Below, piece by piece: positions 10,666 through 62,890 of a stretch of DNA of 64,000 bases. The notes under the pieces were generated by a model. The model had not been told where the DNA came from. It searched no databases and saw only the letters and a program-made list of their open reading frames with translations. Position 1 is the first letter of the stretch. Every line of letters starts with the position of its first letter. A program made the position numbers and the translations under genes. This DNA is from Dicyema japonicum (Eukaryota > Animalia > Dicyemida). Where the stretch lies: assembly GCA_011109175.1 (NCBI GenBank), contig RDEW01000013.1, positions 1,184,767-1,248,766 on the forward strand, read 5' to 3'.

Positions 10666-12315
10666 TTATAGCCCCGCATGTGCAACACTCAAAGAAACAA
10701 TATTTATAGTTAGTCTTTTCCATCTTCCTCTGTCGAATGCGAGTGATCTCAATTCGTCCAGGTCGTCTCCCGTCTTTAGATTTTTTCTCACACGATTTAA
10801 GTCTTTGTTTAGGGCTGTCGGAAGTGTCGATCTAGGTCGTCCGCGGAAGGGTTTTTCGCATCTGTCAAAGTAATCTTCCATCGCTTTGTTAGCGGGTGCG
10901 TCCGGGTTCATTCTTAGTACATGCCCAAATAGCCTCCACCGGGCATCTATCACATCCTTGCTGATGTAAGAACACATACACTTGTTGTAGATACCAGTGG
11001 TTGATATTCTACGTGGCCACTCCATTCCGAGTAAGCTTCTTAGTTGCCTTCTATGGAACGAATCCAGTTTCAATAGTTCTTTGTTGAAGGAACTTCCCCA
11101 TGTCCCAGCGTTATACAGTAGGATCGGTTTCACAAACGCGTTGTAAAGCCTGCATCTGATGTCAATTCCAAGTCCTTTGGCCCTTAGCCATCCTTTCTTC
11201 AGTTTAGCCATTGCCGCATTTGCCAGTGTTTTCCTCCTTAGTACATCTTCAGCGTCTCCTAGTAGAGAGCCGAGCTTATTAGTACGTCTCCATCTTTCAT
11301 GAGTAATATCGTCTTCTCTTTTGATTTCCGTAATTTCAGTTTTGTTAACATTTACGCTGAGAAACCATTTCTCAAGCTCCGCAGGTGCATTTTCTAGCAG
11401 GTGTTGGAGTGCGGTCACATCCCGTGATACAAAATCCACATCATCCGCATAAGATGTCTCTTCTATGTCTCCTATATAGCATTTACGGAGGTCGCGGAGT
11501 GCAGATTCAAGGTATATGGTGAATAGTAAAGGGGAGAGGGAATCACCCTGGGGTGTCCCAATCGTTGTTTTGAAACTGCGGGAAGTTGCTCCTTCTGTCC
11601 TCACAGATAGTCTTGTGTTCGCAAGTAGTAGTCTGATTATCCTAACCGACGATTCATCCAATATTTGCTCAAGCACATTCATCAGTTTCTGTCTGTTTAT
11701 TGAGTCGAAAGCTCTGGAGAGATCTATTCCCAACACGGTTGTTGCGCTCTTGAATCTTTGGTGCGTTGCGCAGCGCCATCTGTGGCTCCATACAATGTCT
11801 GCCGTAGACCTCCCTTCTCGGAACCCACTTTGACTTGCTGGTAGGTATAGATCCGCCACACCCTTTATCCGGCTTAGTGCAATGTTTGCCAGCACCTTGC
11901 GTATCGAATTCAGAAGTATTATCGGGCGGAGATTTTCTACTGGTCCTTTTGATTTGTTCGGTTTTTGTATGGGTATTAATAATCCATTTCCAAGTCCTAG
12001 ATCGGTATTAGTTTCAAAGACGTCATTTAGGGTTTTTGCAATTGTGTCGCTAAGTTTTTTTGGCCCATATTTTAGGAGCTCAGGGCTTATGTTGTCCGGC
12101 CCAGCACTCTTGTTGTTCTTCAGTTTATTTATCGCTAATTCCACCTCTTCCACTGTGATTGGGATTTTTAGCGCCTTTGCTTCTCCCTGGAAAGGGGGAA
12201 AGTCATTATTTTCTTTATTCAACAGTGTTTCGAAGTGTCGTGCAATCAATTCTGCTTTTTCTTCCGGGTTACCCACTTTGTCCTTTCTTTGTCCGCAGCA
12301 GCCGCAAAGCCGCAT
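10666..12315 (-). CDS. RTE reverse transcriptase (RT and thumb region of the single ORF)
   Basis: Motifs KSAGPDNI, RPIILL, QSGFREGRST, IDLSRAFDS, QGDSLSPLLF, YADD, RWRLFGHVLR, RGRP. Confidence 0.93.
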   Translation of the reverse strand: MRLCGCCGQRKDKVGNPEEKAELIARHFETLLNKENNDFPPFQGEAKALKIPITVEEVELAINKLKNNKSAGPDNISPELLKYGPKKLSDTIAKTLNDVFETNTDLGLGNGLLIPIQKPNKSKGPVENLRPIILLNSIRKVLANIALSRIKGVADLYLPASQSGFREGRSTADIVWSHRWRCATHQRFKSATTVLGIDLSRAFDSINRQKLMNVLEQILDESSVRIIRLLLANTRLSVRTEGATSRSFKTTIGTPQGDSLSPLLFTIYLESALRDLRKCYIGDIEETSYADDVDFVSRDVTALQHLLENAPAELEKWFLSVNVNKTEITEIKREDDITHERWRRTNKLGSLLGDAEDVLRRKTLANAAMAKLKKGWLRAKGLGIDIRCRLYNAFVKPILLYNAGTWGSSFNKELLKLDSFHRRQLRSLLGMEWPRRISTTGIYNKCMCSYISKDVIDARWRLFGHVLRMNPDAPANKAMEDYFDRCEKPFRGRPRSTLPTALNKDLNRVRKNLKTGDDLDELRSLAFDRGRWKRLTINIVSLSVAHAGL

Positions 12316-23191: not shown

Positions 23192-23635
23192 ATGTTAACT
23201 TTACTGATGACATTGGTTTCTTTAGTATTAACAGCGTACCAATAAATTCAACTCAAAAACTACAAGGTAATTTTATTAAAGTTGATTTTACTAGATAAAC
23301 AATGTGAAAGAGAGGCTATTAGGCTTGCAGTGGAATTTGACGAATGTAAAAAAAAAATCTTAGATATAAAGACTCTCGTTGATGCTATCCGAATTAAGAA
23401 CAAAGATAATTGTAATGAAGAATATAATGATATAATGTATTATTGCACATTTGGGAATCTTCGCAAACTTTATGAAGAATATAGTTGGAACAGCACAAAT
23501 GCTTATTGTGTGCAAATGCCCCATCTAAAGTTAGCACTGTTAACTATTTGCAATAACGTGAAAGCCACAAATACAAGATTAAGACTGTACGCTACATGTG
23601 TAAATAGTACACCGTCTAATTATGAGAATAGTTAA
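23192..23635 (+). CDS. Secreted family copy 5. Intron 23267-23294; exon 1 is 1 nt short (frameshift, real or assembly error)
   Basis: gtaatt reads gtatt in exon 1. Exon 2 is open to the stop codon. Confidence 0.7.
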
Positions 23636-36097: not shown

Positions 36098-39000
36098 ATG
36101 ACCGAAACAGCAAATGAGAAACTCCAACTATGCTTAACTACAGATGAGTACAATTGTCTTTCTCATTCTATTAAAAAGCAAGCTTACTAATCTAGTGGAT
36201 TCTAAACTACAAGAAATAGGAAAATTTAGGAACACGTTCCTTAAGAAATTCATTGAACAAAAGGTAAATTCAACTTAACATGAAAGAACAAAATTCTTTA
36301 GAGGAGGATTTCACAACACTTGAGCAGAGATTTGACTCAGGATTCTATAAGACTTGGAAAGTCAACAATTTTAGTTAATTTTCAGAGGAGGTTAAGGAAA
36401 TCTGCAAAAACGCAAAAATTGACCTTGGAAAAGTATGAGTTGCTAGGAAAACTGGAAATAGCTGAAAGTGAGGGAATATCTTCAAAGTTAGTAATTTTAC
36501 TCATAAAGTACCTATTTGAACGGTACGAGACTGAGACGACAAGCCTTAGAAGTCAAGTTGAATATCTGCAGACTGAATTGCATAAAATGAACAGTGAGGT
36601 GTTGTCCTCTAGGCAGCAGTACGTAGTTCTTTGTATTACTGTAGAATGTCAACTCCATGCACGTGAAGATTGAACTGGACGAACAGAAAAACCTTAGTCA
36701 TTAGTTTTTGTTTTAATAATTTGGTTAGCATTGTTAGAGTCATGTTTGTAAGAGTTTTGACTATTTCTTCCAAGAATCTGACTGAGGTGGGTTTACCTAT
36801 GACTGTAGATTTACGATGAATATTTTAATATTAATGAAGCTTTAATGAGAGAAAGAAGTGAGAATATTTGCATGACAGAGTCTGTGTTGATACTTAGCAG
36901 GTTTGTGCTTTAATTCCCTCTTTTACCGAGCTGTTAATTAACCCTTTAGTCTTGTTATTGACACAAATAATCATAGTAACTCAATCTTGCAGGGCTACTG
37001 TAAGGTTGGAGGACGCTTTTCCCTTTTGATTTGTAAGAAATTCCTCAATGAGCCACCTCCTTTATCGCTCATACCCATTCCCTTACCTTTTATTAGCCCA
37101 AATTTTTTGTCACTTTGTTGTTAATTTTTTATATCATTTTGATGAATTGCACTTCGTATTTCTTTTTCTTATATAAGCTTATTCTGCTTTTACTTGATTT
37201 CCTTAGTTTTATAAATTTAAATCTGTTGATAGTTTACTTATGTCTCCCATTGAAGTACTCATCTTCTAATTTCTTAGCGATTTTTTATACTAACTTCTTA
37301 GTCTTACTTTAGTTTTATGTGCTTTATTGCTTATTGAATTCTTTTCCACCTCAAAGTTAATTTGTAGGAAGCTGAGGACAAGGCACTGAGTATTATGAAA
37401 TTAAAGAGCATAATTAAAGACTACTGCAATCCATGAATGAGACTCAAAGAATATGGAATGTTACTTCAAGATATTCTTCTCCAATTCCATCAATTATAGC
37501 GAGTAAAGGCTAATGCTGATAAAGTGACTCAAAAGATCGACAAACTGAAGGCTGAACGTTGACAACTTAAATATCAAAGCAACAATTTGTCACTCCAAGT
37601 GCAAATTCTTTTCAAACAAATTCACGAATTACGTGGAGGGGAAGTCGTTGAGACATTGACCATTCGGAACTGGTCATAGATTATGTGGAACATTGGTCAA
37701 ATTAATGTTTGAATGATTTTTATTCAAGAATGATCGAGGAATTACAAACCTGAAATCTTCAGTTGCTGTTTACTGTGAGAAGGTATATGAGTGAGGAACA
37801 GGGGGGAAACCGAGAAATATGAAGAAATGCTAAACGAGAGCAGACTGAGGATTGAAGACCTAACCAAATCTAATGAGGAGTTATCCTCACTTAGAGTCCG
37901 GGACTCTGACTTGGTATTTCAGTGATTTTTACTTAAGTTTGATGTGATTTCTTAACAACTTGATCTCTTCCACTCAATGCTTTCAAAATCTAAAAGTGTT
38001 CAAAATATGGACTTTTCCGTTCACTCAGTGAACGAGATTGTTAAAAACACGTTCCTTTCAATTCGGCGCCATGTGGCTAGTTGGTCATAAATTATTTTGT
38101 TTCCGATGGCGTCATTGGATATACCTTGCTGAGGAGACGCCCAATGCCTGGCCGGCATCAAGATAAGCGAATTATTCTCCCCCGGTGGACAATGTCGTTA
38201 TCTGGAGACAAGTTCTGGAACCCTGGAGCGAGTCAGAATCTAAGAGTTAGTTTGGCTACCATTGGTCTTTGGAATAATTTTAATTTTTTTTAATTTTACA
38301 AGAAAAAGTTGACAGATTGCGAAGTATAAACATGGATTTTACGCAAAGTAACGGAGATCTGTCCTCTTGAGTATTATTCTACTATTAAAATAACTTGAAT
38401 TTTACATTGAGATTAGCCACTATAGAAAACGACATAAACTTGTACCAGGCCAATATCGAAGTACTAAGGAGACAATGAAGACAAACGAACACAGAATGTA
38501 TTGCTAAAAGAAAAAATAGGAAATTGTACCGGGTTTTTTTGCTTTATTAATATTGAAAGACATTGGTGATGTAAGAAAGCAGTTTTATGAAAGCAAATTG
38601 TCGGTAATTTCTGTCAAAATCGAAAAAGACGGCCTTATCAGTGAAAATAATAGACTTTTGTCGAAAAATTGTGCTCTCAGATCAAAACAGAGGGTCTTTA
38701 GTTCCATTGCCAACGATATTCTGGCTAGTCCGCTGTGGAAAAGTAACTGTTATAAACAAGCAGAATTGATTCTGATGATCGTATGTTTGTAGAAAAGCGA
38801 GTCCAAGACCTTTCCTTTGCCTTGATTGAATCGAAGAATCTCCTATCTAAAATTGACCGGGAAAACACAAAAGGCCATGGTGGTGTTTGGTCTTTATTCC
38901 ATACAAGGACAGAGGAGCTTGAAAATCAACTAGCAGGGGTAGGAAAGTATTTTAAAGAAACAAGTCAACTATGATTTCCTACCAGAGTGAAGTTTCTGTT

Positions 39001-39150
39001 AATAAGTGAATCAAACTCCACCCTCTTGCGAAACTTACATCTCACGCCATCTTTCAAGAACGATGTAGATCGTTTTATGAACATGGACCTTGAAGACCAT
39101 CGAAGGAGAGCTGAGGTCATCTAATGAGGATATATTGAATATATTTTTGA
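36098..39150 (+). pseudogene. TPR: Unprocessed, partial pseudogene of nucleoporin TPR/Megator
   Basis: Segments match TPR as I recall it: LQLCLTTDEYNCLSHSIKSKL, SLRSQVEYLQTELHK, KNLTE/IYDEY, LSLQVQILF..ELRG, IEELQ..NLQLL. Micro-introns retained. In-frame stops at 37497, 37560 and 37751. Internal deletions and a SINE insertion. Confidence 0.7.
38063..38290 (+). mobile_element. SINE-like family C copy inserted in the TPR pseudogene
   Basis: Half palindrome head, core at 38108-38163, LINE-like tail. Confidence 0.75.
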
Positions 39151-49394: not shown

Positions 49395-51488
49395 GGTTGT
49401 AGGAAAAAAAGTCAAGTGGAAAAAAGGTCAAGCGGAAAAAAAGTCAAGTCCGTAAGCGGAAAAAAGGTCAAGTTGTCTTTTTTAGTTTATATCGCATTTT
49501 TGTGATACTACTAGCATCTTTTAATTTTTAAAAATTTTTTCAATACTTGACTTTTTTTTTCCATTTTTGAAAATTTTTCCCTTATAAATTTTCGAAATTT
49601 AGCGCAAAACGGAAAAAAAGTCAAGTCCGTTAACGAAATTACGGACTTGACTTTTTTTCCGTTTATAAATTAAGATTTTTATTCATGATCGTTTCATTTT
49701 AAAGTAAGCGAGTTTAGAATAACAAATTATTTAAATAGTTAATTTTGGCTAATGTTAATGAATTAAAATGTCCCGCCACAACTAAAACTACACGTGGTGG
49801 AAATAAATTCTAAAAATAAAACAGATTTTTTCTACTTTTAAAATTTTTTAAAATGTTATAAACATATGATTTTTATTTAACGTGAATCAAGGGATTATTT
49901 AATGTGAATCAAAAGAATATTTAATATTCCATGCAATTGCTTTTAGGGCTTCTCCTACTGTTTTTTTCCGTCCTGGCGATCCAGACATATATTTAAAAGT
50001 TTTTTTGTCCATCAATCGTTTTTTTATTTGTTCTTGTTGAAATTCTTTTTCCAAAGGAATCCTGGTCAATAATAGTTTTCGTCATTTTTTCTTCTTTTTG
50101 GAATGACGATATAATATTCCATATCGATGGATGACGATATCCCGTCAAATTGTATAATTTATTGTTCCACCCTTCACAATAGTTATTTGTTCTTTGTTTA
50201 TTATTGAGTGTAGCTTCATACACATTCCATAAATTTGGAGGAAACAATGGAGCAATGTGCTGTATTCTATCAGCTAAGGGGTTTTCTTGATCATTTAAGC
50301 AACGATAATAACCGCGAACATATGTTCTATCAAAATAATCTAATATATATTTTGGATCTGGAATATTTTCTGGCATATTATTCATTAGGAATTCTATTCC
50401 TTCTTCCATATCTTGAATGGGTAAAAACGCAAGAGCGTCTATCATTGCGCAAAAAATGTTAAAATTAATATTTTCTTTATATTGTTTTACTAGATGCAAT
50501 TCTTGAATTTTTCTCCAGGTTGACTGTCTTAGATGATAATAACATCCTCTAATATGTATTCGTCTCCCAAATACTGCAAGGACAGCTCGAAATATCGAAT
50601 CTTCAAAGTCTGCCATAATAGTTTCAAGACGAAATGGAATATCTCAGAGATCGAAAATATTTTTTGGAATATGTAGAGACAAGCGTTGATTCCTTAGTGT
50701 TCGCTTGAAAGAATCTGCAGAAGGGAGAATAATTCTGGTTGCTGTTTCACATTGAGACACAACCTTTGAATAGATTTGTAAGGGATTTTTTTGACTCGTT
50801 TTAGCAATAAGTTTTGCTTCGTTGCACAATTTCATCAGTTTTATTTGACTTTCGTCAAATTCGTGATTGTGAGAAATTCCTTCTTTGGGAAATTCAACTT
50901 AAAATCCGTATATTGATTAAGTCAAAAAGATTAAACCAAAGCGAAAAAAGTCAAGGTCAAAAAGATTAAACCAAAGCGAAAAAAGTCAAGTCAATTTTAT
51001 TATATTAGGAATCCTTGGCCCCCAAGCAGATGAGTTGGTTCGTAAGATCGGCTCCATGATTCAAGCTGTGACCAAGATCTGCGAGAGACTAGTTGGTTCC
51101 GAGAACGTATCTCGTTGGCTATTGTTAGGGGAAATAGCATGGCCATTCAGATGCCTTAATTTAATTTTTATTCATTTGATAATTAAAAAAAATTTTATTA
51201 TTACCTTGAAATTCTTAAATTGATTTAGTCAAAGCGATTATACCAAAGCGGAAAAAAAGTCAAGTCCGTGATTTCGTTAGCGGACTTGACTTTTTTTCCA
51301 TTTTGCGCTAAATTTCGAAAATTTATAAGGGAAAAATTTTCAAAAATAGAAAAAAAGTCAAGCGGAAAAAAGTCAAGTATTGAAAAAATTTTTAAAAATT
51401 AAAAGATGCTAGTAGTATCAAAAAAATGCGATATAAACTAAAAAAAGACGACTTGACCTTTTTTCCGCTTGACTTTTTTCCGCACTCC
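49395..51488 (-). mobile_element. MULE/Mutator element with ~250-bp TIRs and 9-bp TSD AGGAGTTAC
   Basis: TSD at 49386-94 and 51489-97. TIRs start with GG and contain cggaaaaaaagtcaag repeats. Confidence 0.92.
49993..50835 (-). pseudogene. MULE transposase with an internal deletion
   Basis: ADFE, GCYYH (CxxH), LFPPNLWN and RTNNYCEGWNNK motifs. The region carrying the first catalytic Asp is missing between the two ORFs. Confidence 0.85.
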
Positions 51489-52260: not shown

Positions 52261-53293
52261 CAACACTTTTAGGATTAATAGTAAAGAACAGAAATTAGCA
52301 TAATATTAGGAGATTTAATAATAAAACATATTCTGCATTTCTGATATGCACATTGGTCTCCTACAAGTTAGTGAGGCTGGGGTACTTAACTAACATTAAA
52401 CAGATAATTTAAATGTCAAAAATTGACATTTAAAAGTCGAGAGGTAACACTTATGTTACAATGACGGGACTATGTCGACAAACTTTTTCATCTCAATATC
52501 ATTCAACCACAAGTCGATATATAACATTAATCTTCCTTAATCTCATTAATGCCACAGTAATGACTATAAATGTCGCAACCTAGGTCAATGTTATGAATGA
52601 TCTCGTCTTTGATACTATTCTTGAAATGTAATAATAATCGAATTGATCGACAAATTTTTTTGAATAAAAGAAATCAAGAGCCATCGTGTCATTTTAGGTT
52701 CGCCTACACAGTCTCGTTCCGTTCAATTAACCTGATAAACTCTGATATGATCTGTTAATTAAAAGGAAAATCAATAAAGTCAAATTAACAAATCGTTCAA
52801 ACAGCCAAGAGACAATGACCCACTCAATGGGCTGTCGAAACCACAACGACTAAGATAGTCGTCTAACCATACCATGATAGCGTTTTTGACCCTGACAGTA
52901 ACACTTTATTATATTGCCTAAACTACAACAGTAATTATCGTTACTATGGAAACACAGTCATTAAATAAAAGGATTTAAAACGGAATTTTAAACGGAATTA
53001 TAAAAGGATTTTAAACGGAAAATGGAATTATAATTAAATTAGTCATTCATTAAAGGACGAATAACGTATCTAGTTGTGACTCGATTTATTTATCTAAGAT
53101 CACCTAGGGAGAAAGGTATCTAAGCCAATTAGATAAGTGATCCCAGTTTCTACTAACTCAAGACTCAATCAATATATTTTTGAAAACAAGATTTCAACCA
53201 ATTTATTTATTTAACAAAAAATATTTATGTAAAATAATTTAAATTTATTTAATATTTTTACAAATATAATTTGAATAAAATAAATTTAGTGCT

Positions 53294-55002
53294 ATGCGAT
53301 GTTTTTTCCGTTTTCTATTTCTATTTCTCCTCCCAATTGCAAAAACCGGTACGAGTCATTTTTTCTAAGATTTATCATTCATTCTTTATTTTCTAGATTC
53401 TGTCGGCATATTCTCAAATGAGATAACCCCCCAGTCTAGACACGAAGACTCACAGAAACCACAAAACAAGACTTCTACAATAATTTTCTCAAAATTTACT
53501 ACAAATTCAAATACCACGTTTTCGGCTTATCAGAGTCACGCTACATTAAATTTGAGTCACGTTTCGACAAATAGGGTCTCAATTCAACGCAGTCCGGCTC
53601 AGTTATCAACTCTAAGAAACTCTACGCTTAGTACTTCCGAACATGAAAACTCCCCTAAACCAGCTGTGAGCAGTCTGAATAGGCACACTGAGTCATCTAC
53701 TGTGGGTGTCTCTTCTGTGAAGTATTTGAATATGCCCAATGGTGGATTATCAGACATAGCCAATACATCCACTAGGAAAATCAATAACAATCGATATCCA
53801 ACTGTGAATATTTCTACTAGAACTGAGAATATGGCTGATCACATTGTCAGTGAAACCATTACTAAGGCCACAACGATGACGCCTGAAATGATCATCAGAG
53901 ATCCCACTGAGAGGATCACTAATAAATATTCAGCGAATATTACATCCCCCAAGGATAGCGAAACCATGGATTTGTCTAGTACAGTAACACGTCAACCGAA
54001 AACCACTCAATCGTCATCCAAGAAGATCTCTTATGCTAAATCCGAAATTACTAAGGAACATACGACCCACACATTTCAACCAAATACAGAAGAGCCAAAT
54101 GAAAGGATCCCCGACAGGAATTCTGAGTATTCTATAAGCCCTGATAGGACAACGAATAAATCTACTAAGGTCGTTCTTCTACCGAAAACCAGAGATTCAA
54201 GTGAGGGGATTTTTATTAAAGGCCCAGGTGAAAGAAGAGGTAAAGCTACTGCAGTCACATCTCGACCAAAGAACAGACACCCAACTGAAAAGATCTCTGA
54301 TAGGACTCTTGAAAATTCTAAAACCATCGGTAGGACAACAGCTGTATCCACAACGCTGACTCATCTACCTAACACAGGTAATTTCTCAACGGAGAGGATT
54401 ACTCAATCTAATTCGGACTTTAGTAAAGATTTTGATGATACTACAAATAAATCTACTGCGACTGGTCATCGATCCACTATTCCACATATTCATAACAAGA
54501 ATACGAAATATATTGCTGATACGACAAACAGGACAATTCCACATGCAAAAAATACTACATCCTCTAAATCACCAGTTGAACAGATTTCTTCTACTACAAA
54601 GAAGCTGATAAATCAAGGAAATGAGAGTACTCATAATAAAATCATTGGAATGAGCACCACAGGTAGTCTCAAGAATATCGAAAAATGGTCACAAAATTCA
54701 AACTCCACAACAGATGGCAGAATTTTGCCGCCAAAAGATTTAAAATTTAAATATGAACACGAGCTTTTTAGTGTGTCTAGTAAATACGTAATAATTGGTG
54801 CGTTTACATCAGTTTTAGTCGCCGTAGGTTTTCAGTTTTTTGATTTTTAGTAATGTTGTTTCTCTGCACATCCTTGTGGCGCAAAATATCAATAATTAGT
54901 CGTAAAGGACACTATAATCCTCGACAGGCTGAGTATGAAGCATCTGCTTTTGTGGATATTTGCACTACTACCATGCTTGCCAGACGAGAGCGACTTGTTT
55001 GA
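53294..55002 (+). CDS. crb: Crumbs-like type I membrane protein with a Ser/Thr-rich mucin-like ectodomain. Exons 53294-348, 53397-54827, 54851-55002; 545 aa
   Basis: Signal peptide MRCFFRFLFLFLLPIAKT; ~460-aa S/T-rich region; TM YVIIGAFTSVLVAVVMLFLCTSLW after removing a 23-nt intron; tail RKISIISRKGHYNPRQAEYEASAFVDICTTTMLARRERLV*. An alternative in-frame acceptor exists at 53369. Confidence 0.8.
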
Positions 55003-56839
55003 GTTTTATAGACAATCATTTTTTAAAAATTATGCATTTTTTGATTTGTAACCCACGTGGTTATTATCCATTAGGATCTTACTAGTGATTGTCTTTGATT
55101 GAACTAACTCGTTTGTTTTTTCTTTTTTAAACAGATTAATTGACTATCATGACAACTACTGAAGTCTAGACGGACTCTATGTGATCGATAGTTTTCAGTG
55201 AAATACCTCAATTGCTGAATCTCTACTAAGATATATTAGTGCAATGTTAAGTATACTTAACGCTACAAAGATGTACCTGATTACGCCTAAGTGTAATTCG
55301 AAGGTATATATTTGACGATGATGATCCTCACGACGCAGATTTTGGAATTGAACTGCTTTGAAATTATAATTTTAATAAGTGATCTTGTAGAATCTATTCT
55401 GTCAACAGGTTATATTGTCCACTTATTAACAACTTTCACTCCTTTTATATGGAGATATTTTCATTGACAGTAAAAAGACGCAGTCGAATTATATGATCGA
55501 TAATCTCTAATGAAATTTTTTAGTCGATAAATTTCTTGAATTTCTAGCCAACTTTTTTGACGGCAAATGGAAGTATTTGAAGTAATATATTTCACGATAT
55601 TAATCATTACAACTACTTTATGTGAAGACTTAACAAATCGATTTCGGAATTCAAAGTCATAACCGTGAAGAGTCCCTGTCAAGAGACAATCAACTACTTA
55701 TCAACGACTCATTTAATATACGTTACATGGAGATTTCACTTTTTTTCTTTAACGAGAGTGAGGCAGACCAATAGGGCTGTCCAGGAAGGATAATCTTCAT
55801 GGATTGGAAAGAATAGTGAGTCCTCATTGATTGTGAGGTAGAATCCACAACTAACCCCTATCTACTAGAAGTGGTATTTGCTATTAAAGAGTAAATCATA
55901 ACAGGTCAAAACTGGTACTTTTCTGTCATCCGCCAATATGAAAGTCAATATTCAACGAGTTTTTCTGCGAACAAAAGTGGATACATTTTGTAGACAACGG
56001 AGTCCCCCTAAGAGAAATTGAAAAATTTCGTACCATGGTATCGAGAGTAGAAGCAATTTCATGATCGGATTCAACAAGTTCATTAGTCATGTCGAGATTT
56101 TCATGTGTGTTTCCTGCAAAGAGAAAACTGATTATGACTATAATTGACAGACTAATTCTCTCTCCTTACTGAGTCATGCCGGCGCTTGTTGGCTGGCTGT
56201 TAAGTCAACTCATAAGTTGGGAAGACTCGTGTTGGATTGGGAGGACTCCATTAAATTTGACAACTTTTTAAACTACCGTTGAATAATTAGTCAAATGAAT
56301 CCCACTAGTCCGCTGTTAATATAAACAGTCGTCTTTTGGTAATGTGGTTACGTGCCTAGTTTCTGATTAGCCAACAATCAGTGAAGATGCCTAAAATAAA
56401 TAGTTACAAGAGGATGCTGACATCTAAAATTGGCTCTTACTGCAAATGCGGGGATATAAGTATTAGGCTGACGTGAAACTGGTTTTTGGAATCATAGTGT
56501 AGTGAATGAAATAAAAAATTCCAAAGACCACGGTAACACGGAACTATCAACGTGACCTCGCACGATCCAACTTGACACAATGTTTTTCCCTCGATCCCAC
56601 GCAAGTGCGTATCGGCCATATAACTGGATACTCGTAGTCACAACGACACGTTCCTCAGTTCTTACGTATAGGGACTACAGAGGCATTGAAGACTTGGACT
56701 TTCCAGAAGTTTATCTTTTCGTATTTTAAAATTTATATTAAATATATAAATTTATTTATTAAATAAATAAATGAATAAACGACATAATCATGTTGTTTTG
56801 CTTATCTTATTGTTTATGAATTAACAGAAATTGCTAGAA

Positions 56840-62291: not shown

Positions 62292-62890
62292 TTATCCAAA
62301 TTGCTCGAATCCCCTGATAACCATCTTGTGGTCGCTGACAGTCGTCGAGCCTTCATATGAACGTGCGTTTACTAGAAGGTGTTTGTCTTTAGCCCGGCAT
62401 ATGACATAATCTATTTGGTTGTATATTGGGACCAGCTTTCCCTCTGAGTTCCTTCGCTTCCCATCCACGTAGTTTTGTGGCAGGCAGGATGCGTAGATGC
62501 AGTATTGCATAGGAAAAGGTTGTTTGCCATACAAAAGTGACCAAGTATTGTCCCGGGTAGGTTTCTTATTCCACGTCCATGTTCTCCCAAGAAAACGTCA
62601 TCCGGGTTATTCTTCATCCCGATTTTTGCATTCAAATCCCCAGCAATGAGTATTAGTGATGACGACTCATATTCGTTGTACGTTTGTAACAGTGTTGAAT
62701 AGAAGTCGTCTAGTTCTGTCGGATCTTTCGCTACTCTCCCGCAGTGTGGCGCATAAACATTTACAATTGTCAGAAAGCTCTTCGAAGGAGGTAAGTCGTT
62801 TAGCCGGATTTGTATAACACAGATCCTGTCATTCACACTCCATATACGGTGGACTGCACTTGTCAACTTTGAGTATATGGCAAATCCAAT
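62292..62890 (-). mobile_element. RTE AP-endonuclease fragment, a different subfamily from the 12.4-13.2 kb copy
   Basis: NVYAPH, DDFY, IAGDLNAKIG, IYNQIDYV and SDH motifs. Confidence 0.85.

Follow-up and report, generated by a model that had tools for sequence, protein, structure and literature searches.

A predicted surface glycoprotein of Dicyema japonicum that pairs a Crumbs-like cytoplasmic tail with a long, repeat-built stalk

The plus-strand locus at 53294-55002 of the Dicyema japonicum DNA analysed here (the whole stretch of 64,000 nucleotides is called the window below) is, as we read its sequence, a gene of three exons whose product would be a type I surface glycoprotein. The last exon would encode the end of a transmembrane (TM) helix and a short cytoplasmic tail resembling the tails of Crumbs proteins, and the predicted ectodomain is a long stalk with no recognisable domains. 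We consider it probable that a Crumbs-derived TM/tail exon has come to sit on a replaced, repeat-built glycoprotein stalk, which would make the protein a long variant of the CRB3 type. The tail carries counterparts of both Crumbs binding motifs, close to the Crumbs spacing, and the TM helix is interrupted by a predicted intron that matches the intron of a mollusc crumbs gene in position and phase. Domain-free Crumbs proteins are already known; what is new is the combination of a Crumbs-type TM/tail exon with a stalk that is long, repeat-built and free of domains.

Gene structure

Removing two GT..AG introns gives a coding sequence of 1638 nucleotides (nt), translated into 545 amino acids (aa). 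The exons, introns and TM helix are laid out as follows.

53294-53348, plus strand: exon 1, with the ATG at 53294; predicted signal peptide, 18 codons plus 1 nt, ending in phase 1
53349-53396, plus strand: intron 1, 48 nt, GTACGA...TTCTAG, phase 1
53397-54827, plus strand: exon 2, 1431 nt, symmetric phase 1-1; encodes the entire ectodomain and 14 residues at the start of the TM helix
54828-54850, plus strand: inferred intron 2, 23 nt, GTTTTC...TTTTAG, phase 1, within the TM helix
54851-55002, plus strand: exon 3, the last 10 TM residues and a 40-aa cytoplasmic tail, with the TGA at 55000-55002
54785-54879, plus strand: TM helix, 24 residues (482-505), interrupted by intron 2 and followed by an R-K stop-transfer

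If intron 1 is left unspliced, the frame stops after 24 residues. Splicing takes out the in-frame stop and connects the signal peptide, which has a basic n-region (R2, R6) followed by the hydrophobic FLFLFLLPIA, with the single long open reading frame (ORF) of the region. If intron 2 is left unspliced, the protein ends in FQFFDF*. The spliced protein has one strongly hydrophobic 19-residue window, with a Kyte-Doolittle maximum of 2.79 at residue 483, and this is the predicted TM helix. The type I topology of signal peptide, one TM helix and 40-aa tail is obtained under the spliced model alone, and the splice is itself a prediction. Two GT..AG introns suffice for a coherent order of signal peptide, 463-aa ectodomain, 24-aa TM helix, R-K and 40-aa tail. 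This is the gene model of an earlier first-pass annotation of the window, whose exons, 23-nt intron and unspliced end were all reproduced.

Cytoplasmic tail

The predicted tail holds KGHYNPRQAEY and ends RRERLV. Two blocks within it resemble the FERM-binding and PDZ-binding motifs of Crumbs.

54907-54936, plus strand: FERM-binding-motif-like block GHYNPRQAEY, G-x-Y-x-P with E at Y+6
54988-54999, plus strand: PDZ-binding-motif-like end ERLV, three of four residues identical to ERLI, with a conservative change of I to V

The published Crumbs signature consists of a FERM motif, RxxxGxYxPS, and a C-terminal [ED][RK][LI][IL] (PMC5968619). In Drosophila Crumbs the Tyr and the Glu six residues further on, the Y10/E16 pair, are essential (PMC4359734). 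The D. japonicum tail keeps the G, Y and P of the FERM motif and has basic residues at G-1 and G-2; it has neither the R at G-4 nor the S that follows P. Three of the five signature residues is the level reported for demosponges (PMC5968619). The glycine lies 31 residues from the C-terminus, compared with 30 in Drosophila (4WSI and 4YL8) and in all the complete Crumbs tails that we retrieved. The motif-level match proposed on first pass, to the FERM and PDZ motifs of Crumbs with similar spacing, is therefore there to be seen in G-x-Y-x-P, the E at Y+6, ERLV and the 31-residue distance.

The Crumbs tails used for comparison were collected with the Drosophila tail sequence, verified from PDB entries 4WSI and 4YL8 and X-padded, as bait. 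This search returned 39 last-exon ORFs of real crumbs genes, and a second search, seeded from one crumbs locus, raised the total to 159 proteins (P0002-P0160) with 57 distinct 38-residue C-terminal stretches; in both searches the proteins retrieved were 58-100% identical to the query tails. The retrieved protostome tails are highly uniform (KRATRGTYSPSxQE...PPEERLI), and all 50 unique tails that reach the C-terminus end in ERLI.

From these real tails we built an anchored two-block position-specific scoring matrix (PSSM), with the PDZ-binding block held at the free C-terminus and the FERM-binding block placed 27-33 residues upstream. The D. japonicum tail scores 17.5 bits, 10.3 from the FERM-binding block and 7.2 from the PDZ-binding block. 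Among 200,000 composition-preserving shuffles 3 do as well, and among 1,000,000 random tails none does. The runner-up among the ORF ends of the window has 7.6 bits, and true family members have 45-51 bits. Calculated analytically, the joint chance is 3e-7 for G-x-Y-x-P together with the PDZ motif, and 4e-10 when E-Y at Y+6/Y+7 is added. Only one of the 1084 six-frame ORFs in the window ends in [ED][RK][LI][ILV] with G-x-Y-x-P near the end, and it is this tail. We take the resemblance to Crumbs to be real but restricted to functional residues, in a tail far more diverged than that of any canonical protostome Crumbs retrieved.

Intron within the transmembrane helix

The tail can be joined to the stalk only through a splice, and we enumerated the GT..AG pairs of at least 16 nt that could provide it. 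The 23-nt intron is the sole one shorter than 50 nt linking exon 2 to the tail frame. The longer in-frame alternatives are one of 50 nt (54850-54899, GTAATG...AATTAG) and one of 65 nt (54835-54899). Introns of 20-27 nt have been documented in just two animal groups, represented by Dicyema japonicum itself and the myxobolid myxozoans, and show hardly any consensus beyond GT(a)..AG (PMC13644364); the 23 nt of intron 2 fall within this range. An intron-length signal taken from all ORF-joining GT..AG pairs in the window was too noisy in such gene-poor, transposon-rich DNA, and the neighbouring TPR-like and UCR-hinge-like ORFs, examined for micro-introns, gave weak Pfam matches only.

The position of intron 2 can be compared with that of introns in real crumbs genes. 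It splits a Val codon as G|TA and is followed by nine full codons and then by the first cytoplasmic Arg (CGC). For the comparison we retrieved the genomic loci encoding ten real Crumbs tails; P0017, one of the ten, is present on both contig L002 and contig L003. The NCBI-annotated 'protein crumbs' of Biomphalaria glabrata (L008:6001-6931) has a phase-1 intron in its TM segment with the identical nine-codon layout. Three further crumbs contigs (L001:3643-4180, L004:527-3180 and L006:1035-1217) also have the TM segment interrupted in phase 1, with eight full codons between the intron and the Arg. The upstream half-TM exon was located in L001 and L004, and L004 shares the split codon G|TA with the window gene.

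Dicyemids are spiralians, as is the Biomphalaria snail that shares the intron. As intron 2 had been placed from the reading frame alone, its match to a real crumbs intron supports the 23-nt splice over the 50-nt and 65-nt options. The match to the Biomphalaria gene also supports Crumbs descent of the TM/tail exon over convergence of its motifs. This line of evidence was absent from the first-pass annotation and, at the level of sequence, supports the intron that the annotation had invoked.

The phase-1 TM intron, present in Biomphalaria glabrata and the three invertebrate contigs, could mark Crumbs gene history.

Evidence against Crumbs descent and alternative explanations

A number of results weigh against a Crumbs-derived exon, or against the splice on which it depends. 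With hmmsearch, profile hidden Markov models (HMMs) of 39 and 50 unique real Crumbs tails give the D. japonicum tail 3.3 and 4.8 bits, neither significant (E = 18 and 5.5 at Z = 5012 proteins), and 98-254 of 20,000 shuffles score as high. The first-pass annotation had expected the tail to match Crumbs profiles; in an ordinary HMM search it does not. The tail keeps about 9 of the 31 positions of the canonical Crumbs tail. Besides the R at G-4 and the S after P it is without the Thr at G+1 (H here) and the Ser at Y+1 (N here), and its final V falls outside the published PDZ-binding motif and ends none of the 50 complete tails retrieved. A phmmer search with a 49-aa tail query against 1.84 billion proteins returned P0001 alone, a junk tandem-repeat ORF, and tail searches of the PDB and the ESM Atlas were blank. 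Searches of 5.8 billion and 1.84 billion proteins found no orthologue in other species, and so yield no evidence of conservation. The TM segment is uninterrupted in the crumbs loci L003, L005, L007, L009 and L010, so the distribution of the TM intron across canonical crumbs genes is uneven. Four public sequencing runs contain this DNA, one large and the others small, all from one 2019 sample; their flat depth, lack of joints and, in three of the four, Nextera adaptor ends mark them as genomic, and they provide no spliced read for either junction. A run search confined to RNA libraries listed none. The pattern of runs fits the D. japonicum genome project, which had one paired-end and four Nextera mate-pair libraries (PMC6736024). 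Finally, all three forward frames are open at 54844-55082, with overlapping stop-to-stop ORFs of 52, 51 and 48 aa, which is unusual at 34% GC, and an open frame by itself is thus weak evidence that exon 3 is coding.

We rejected the match to P0001, a 1321-aa translated tandem repeat that reaches its score by adding eight weak matches together. The case illustrates how repeats inflate E-values with short queries.

The Thr at G+1 and the Ser at Y+1 belong to the residues that aPKC phosphorylates in Drosophila Crumbs. With H and N in their place, FERM binding may no longer be under phospho-regulation here. Its loss has been reported in sponges and placozoans (PMC5968619).

The best-surviving alternative is that a lineage-specific FERM-plus-PDZ tail arose by convergence on a sialomucin-like protein, the gene and its splicing being real and Crumbs descent not. 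A G-[ST]-Y juxtamembrane motif and a C-terminal hydrophobic PDZ ligand do occur together in several unrelated type I proteins. Such an origin would fit the failure of HMMs of real Crumbs tails to find the tail, the small number of positions in common, the V end, seen in no retrieved member, and an ectodomain with no homologue among 5.8 billion proteins. However, the P at Y+2, the E at Y+6, the E-R-L end and the spacing of 31 against 30 are all present, and convergence of protein motifs would not account for the match in intron phase and position to mollusc crumbs. The tails of glycophorin C, neurexin IV/Caspr and the syndecans are of this convergent kind, with a juxtamembrane G-[ST]-Y 4.1/FERM motif and a C-terminal hydrophobic PDZ ligand for p55/CASK-type MAGUKs, but they are without the P at Y+2, the E at Y+6 and the E-R-L-[IV] end that are found here. 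We think convergence unlikely.

Under a second alternative the 23-nt stretch is retained, the protein ends in FQFFDF* as a tail-less or glycosylphosphatidylinositol (GPI)-anchored mucin, and the Crumbs-like ORF downstream is a coincidence. In its favour, the public runs supply no spliced read, GTT at the 5' splice site departs even from the weak GTa consensus, three frames are open downstream, and the unspliced protein closes with 19 hydrophobic residues. By inspection, though, the polar spacer between the nearest Ser (the omega candidate) and the hydrophobic run is about 2 residues, which makes a poor GPI signal. The spliced frame extends the TM helix by ten residues and then supplies the R-K stop-transfer, a chance origin of the tail motif falls below 1e-6 in the anchored test, and the intron falls at a place where real crumbs genes have one. 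A protein without the tail appears very unlikely.

The last alternative keeps gene and tail and changes the junction, with the 50-nt or the 65-nt intron used instead of the 23-nt one or as an alternative to it. Both preserve the tail frame, and for the 50-nt option the GTA at the 5' site is an improvement, the 3' end is rich in A, and the length is near that of intron 1. Either would, however, discard the ten hydrophobic residues and R-K read in the tail frame, put the G of G-H-Y-N-P at position 3 from the membrane, against 8-10 in Crumbs, and lose the match to the mollusc intron position. We regard this as the least probable of the three.

Two further readings were rejected. The syndecan ectodomain is also Cys-free and S/T-rich, but a syndecan reading finds no S-G sites, no GxxxG in the TM helix and no EFYA-type end here; nor is the protein LAMP-like, as the ectodomain is without Cys and the tail without a G-Y-x-x-hydrophobic end.

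Ectodomain

If a Crumbs-derived exon is present, it has an ectodomain quite unlike that of canonical Crumbs. The predicted ectodomain is 463 aa long and contains no Cys, 30.2% S+T (20-40% in each 50-aa block), 8.4% N and 5.4% P, with 14 N-x-S/T sequons and a net basic charge (62 K+R against 44 D+E). These values bear out the first-pass description of some 460 S/T-rich, Cys-free residues with many N-x-S/T sites, and the absence of EGF and laminin-G domains noted at that stage also stands: a Pfam search of both protein pieces found no match even at E<=10. All six frames of the 64-kb window are free of EGF-like Cys patterns, which makes hidden upstream EGF exons unlikely. We rejected upstream EGF/LamG exons of the same gene on this ground and because the signal peptide lies at the first ATG (53294), which an AT-rich non-coding stretch immediately precedes. 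The search of 5.8 billion proteins, a collection without this protein or the organism's gene models or transcripts, found no homologue of the ectodomain.

An AlphaFold2 single-sequence model of the ectodomain has a mean pLDDT of 37 and no secondary structure, which is consistent with intrinsic disorder but weak evidence for it. The stalk nevertheless has an internal order.

53849-54535, plus strand: degenerate repeats of about 63 aa, residues ~170-398, each with a [PS]xE[RK]I[STP] motif

Copies of the motif lie at residues 188, 252, 314 and 349, with a fifth at 411, just past the repeat stretch, and the five are spaced 35-64 residues apart. The repeat segment pairs A-B, B-C and B-D align at z = 5.3-7.2 against shuffles, and Tandem Repeats Finder found no DNA-level tandem repeat in the stalk region. 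Together the motif copies and the segment alignments suggest that the stalk expanded through ancient tandem duplication of a ~63-aa unit.

The PTS domain of a transmembrane mucin commonly has more than ~40% S+T, is Pro-rich and built of tandem repeats, and is often accompanied by a SEA or EGF domain near the membrane. The D. japonicum stalk, with 30% S+T, 5.4% P, degenerate repeats and no SEA or EGF match, does not have these features. 'Mucin-like', the term chosen on first pass, is a loose label: the S+T content speaks for it, and the low Pro content, the net basic charge and the lack of DNA tandem repeats speak against it. 'Disordered, heavily glycosylatable stalk' is the safer description.

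All four public runs differ from the assembly in having A, not T, at 53860, the third position of an Ile codon in exon 2 (a synonymous change), and one base fewer at 53115, in the upstream non-coding region. Two of the runs have G>A at 53059 and 53066. These differences are either assembly errors or alleles.

Related proteins

Canonical Crumbs proteins (Drosophila Crb, vertebrate CRB1/CRB2, mollusc) have the same type I topology, a tail of ~37-40 aa and a motif spacing of 30-31. They differ in having an EGF and laminin-G ectodomain and an ERLI end, where the D. japonicum protein has a Cys-free ectodomain and ERLV. The closest architectural precedents are vertebrate CRB3 and C. elegans CRB-3, which likewise retain the Crumbs TM segment and tail and have a domain-free ectodomain (PMC4359734, PMC5312091). 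Their ectodomains are very short, however, and the whole proteins are ~100-120 aa, whereas here the repeat-built ectodomain is itself 463 aa. C. elegans CRB-3 differs further in having no signal peptide and an EGLI end (PMC4359734). Mucin-type sequence also has a precedent within the family, as Drosophila Crb_C carries a mucin-type T/P-rich insert (PMC5312091). That insert is a short one between EGF repeats 7 and 7a of a canonical ectodomain, whereas in D. japonicum the S/T-rich region is the entire ectodomain. The architecture is thus less new than the first-pass annotation supposed in calling it unusual, since CRB3 and CRB-3 are domain-free and Crb_C has its mucin insert; the long repeat-built stalk is the part that is new.

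Outside the Crumbs family, podocalyxin/CD34-type sialomucins offer a functional parallel: they are proteins of apical membranes in which a mucin ectodomain goes together with an ERM-binding site and a PDZ ligand. Their tails are unrelated, with a DTHL-type PDZ ligand for NHERF, and they are vertebrate-specific; the likeness implies no homology.

A literature search found no paper connecting Crumbs with dicyemids, orthonectids or myxozoans, and a search of the supplementary files of the D. japonicum genome paper turned up no Crumbs, PALS1, Par6 or tight-junction terms.

Genomic surroundings

The Crumbs-like gene is isolated within transposon-rich, gene-poor DNA. The window is 34% GC; the D. japonicum genome is 36.7% GC and 49% repeats, with many LINE (long interspersed nuclear element) copies (PMC6736024), and the GC content of Henneguya is 29%. 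LINE debris is present in the window as a 549-aa ORF at 10666-12315 on the minus strand, with a reverse transcriptase match (RVT_1, E = 7e-33), and a 151-aa ORF at 62411-62866 on the minus strand, with a weak match to an endonuclease-reverse-transcriptase family.

The neighbour 2.7 kb upstream is a 207-aa ATG-initiated ORF on the opposite strand (49993-50616, minus) with no convincing Pfam match. Two plus-strand ORFs of 117 aa, at 36320-36673 and 23282-23635, have sub-threshold matches to nucleoprotein TPR (E = 5e-4) and to the UCR hinge (E = 1.5e-3) respectively, and could belong to real genes as exons. No link could be made between them and the neighbouring ORF pieces at 38553-39124.

Proposed function and significance

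In the reading that we favour, the last exon, encoding the C-terminal third of the TM helix and the 40-aa tail, would derive from the last exon of a Crumbs gene, and the EGF/laminin-G array would have been replaced by a Cys-free, disordered, S/T/N-rich stalk encoded on one symmetric phase 1-1 exon. The signal peptide would take the protein into the secretory pathway, where the stalk may be heavily N-glycosylated and probably O-glycosylated. Inside the cell, the juxtamembrane G-H-Y-N-P...E block could dock a FERM protein of the moesin, Yurt or Expanded class, and the free C-terminal ERLV could dock the PDZ domain of a Stardust/PALS1-type MAGUK or of Par6. The protein might then mark and organise the apical (free) membrane domain as CRB3 does, with a bulky glycan coat in addition. 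Splicing, glycosylation, binding partners and localisation are inferred here, the binding partners by analogy with Crumbs and CRB3, and a role in a host-facing glycocalyx is conjecture.

An exchanged ectodomain need not have cost the protein its function. In Drosophila the Crumbs TM segment and tail alone rescue most crumbs phenotypes (PMC4359734), so a swapped ectodomain is compatible with function.

A bolder version of this proposal is that the gene is the sole Crumbs gene of the dicyemid, with the ancestral TM/tail exon and intron position kept and the EGF/laminin-G ectodomain wholly replaced by the stalk. We hold this only tentatively and think it rather doubtful. If it were so, the gene would be a natural 'domain swap' showing that the tail is the seat of the polarity function and that a glycocalyx-forming module can take the place of the ectodomain on a ciliated surface that faces the host's renal fluid. 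Interest in such a swap is tempered by CRB3, which has already shown the ectodomain to be dispensable.

The match in intron position has a use beyond this gene, as it indicates that gene structure can support homology where the signal of a 40-aa tail is too weak for profiles. If both the splice and Crumbs descent are true, Crumbs architectures would span EGF/LamG giants, the tiny CRB3 and a long, domain-free, repeat-built glycoprotein. A dicyemid is a parasite of ~30 cells without true tissues. On the same two conditions, even so extremely simplified a body plan would have kept an apical polarity module of the Crumbs type, and polarity in such organisms could be studied through one small gene.

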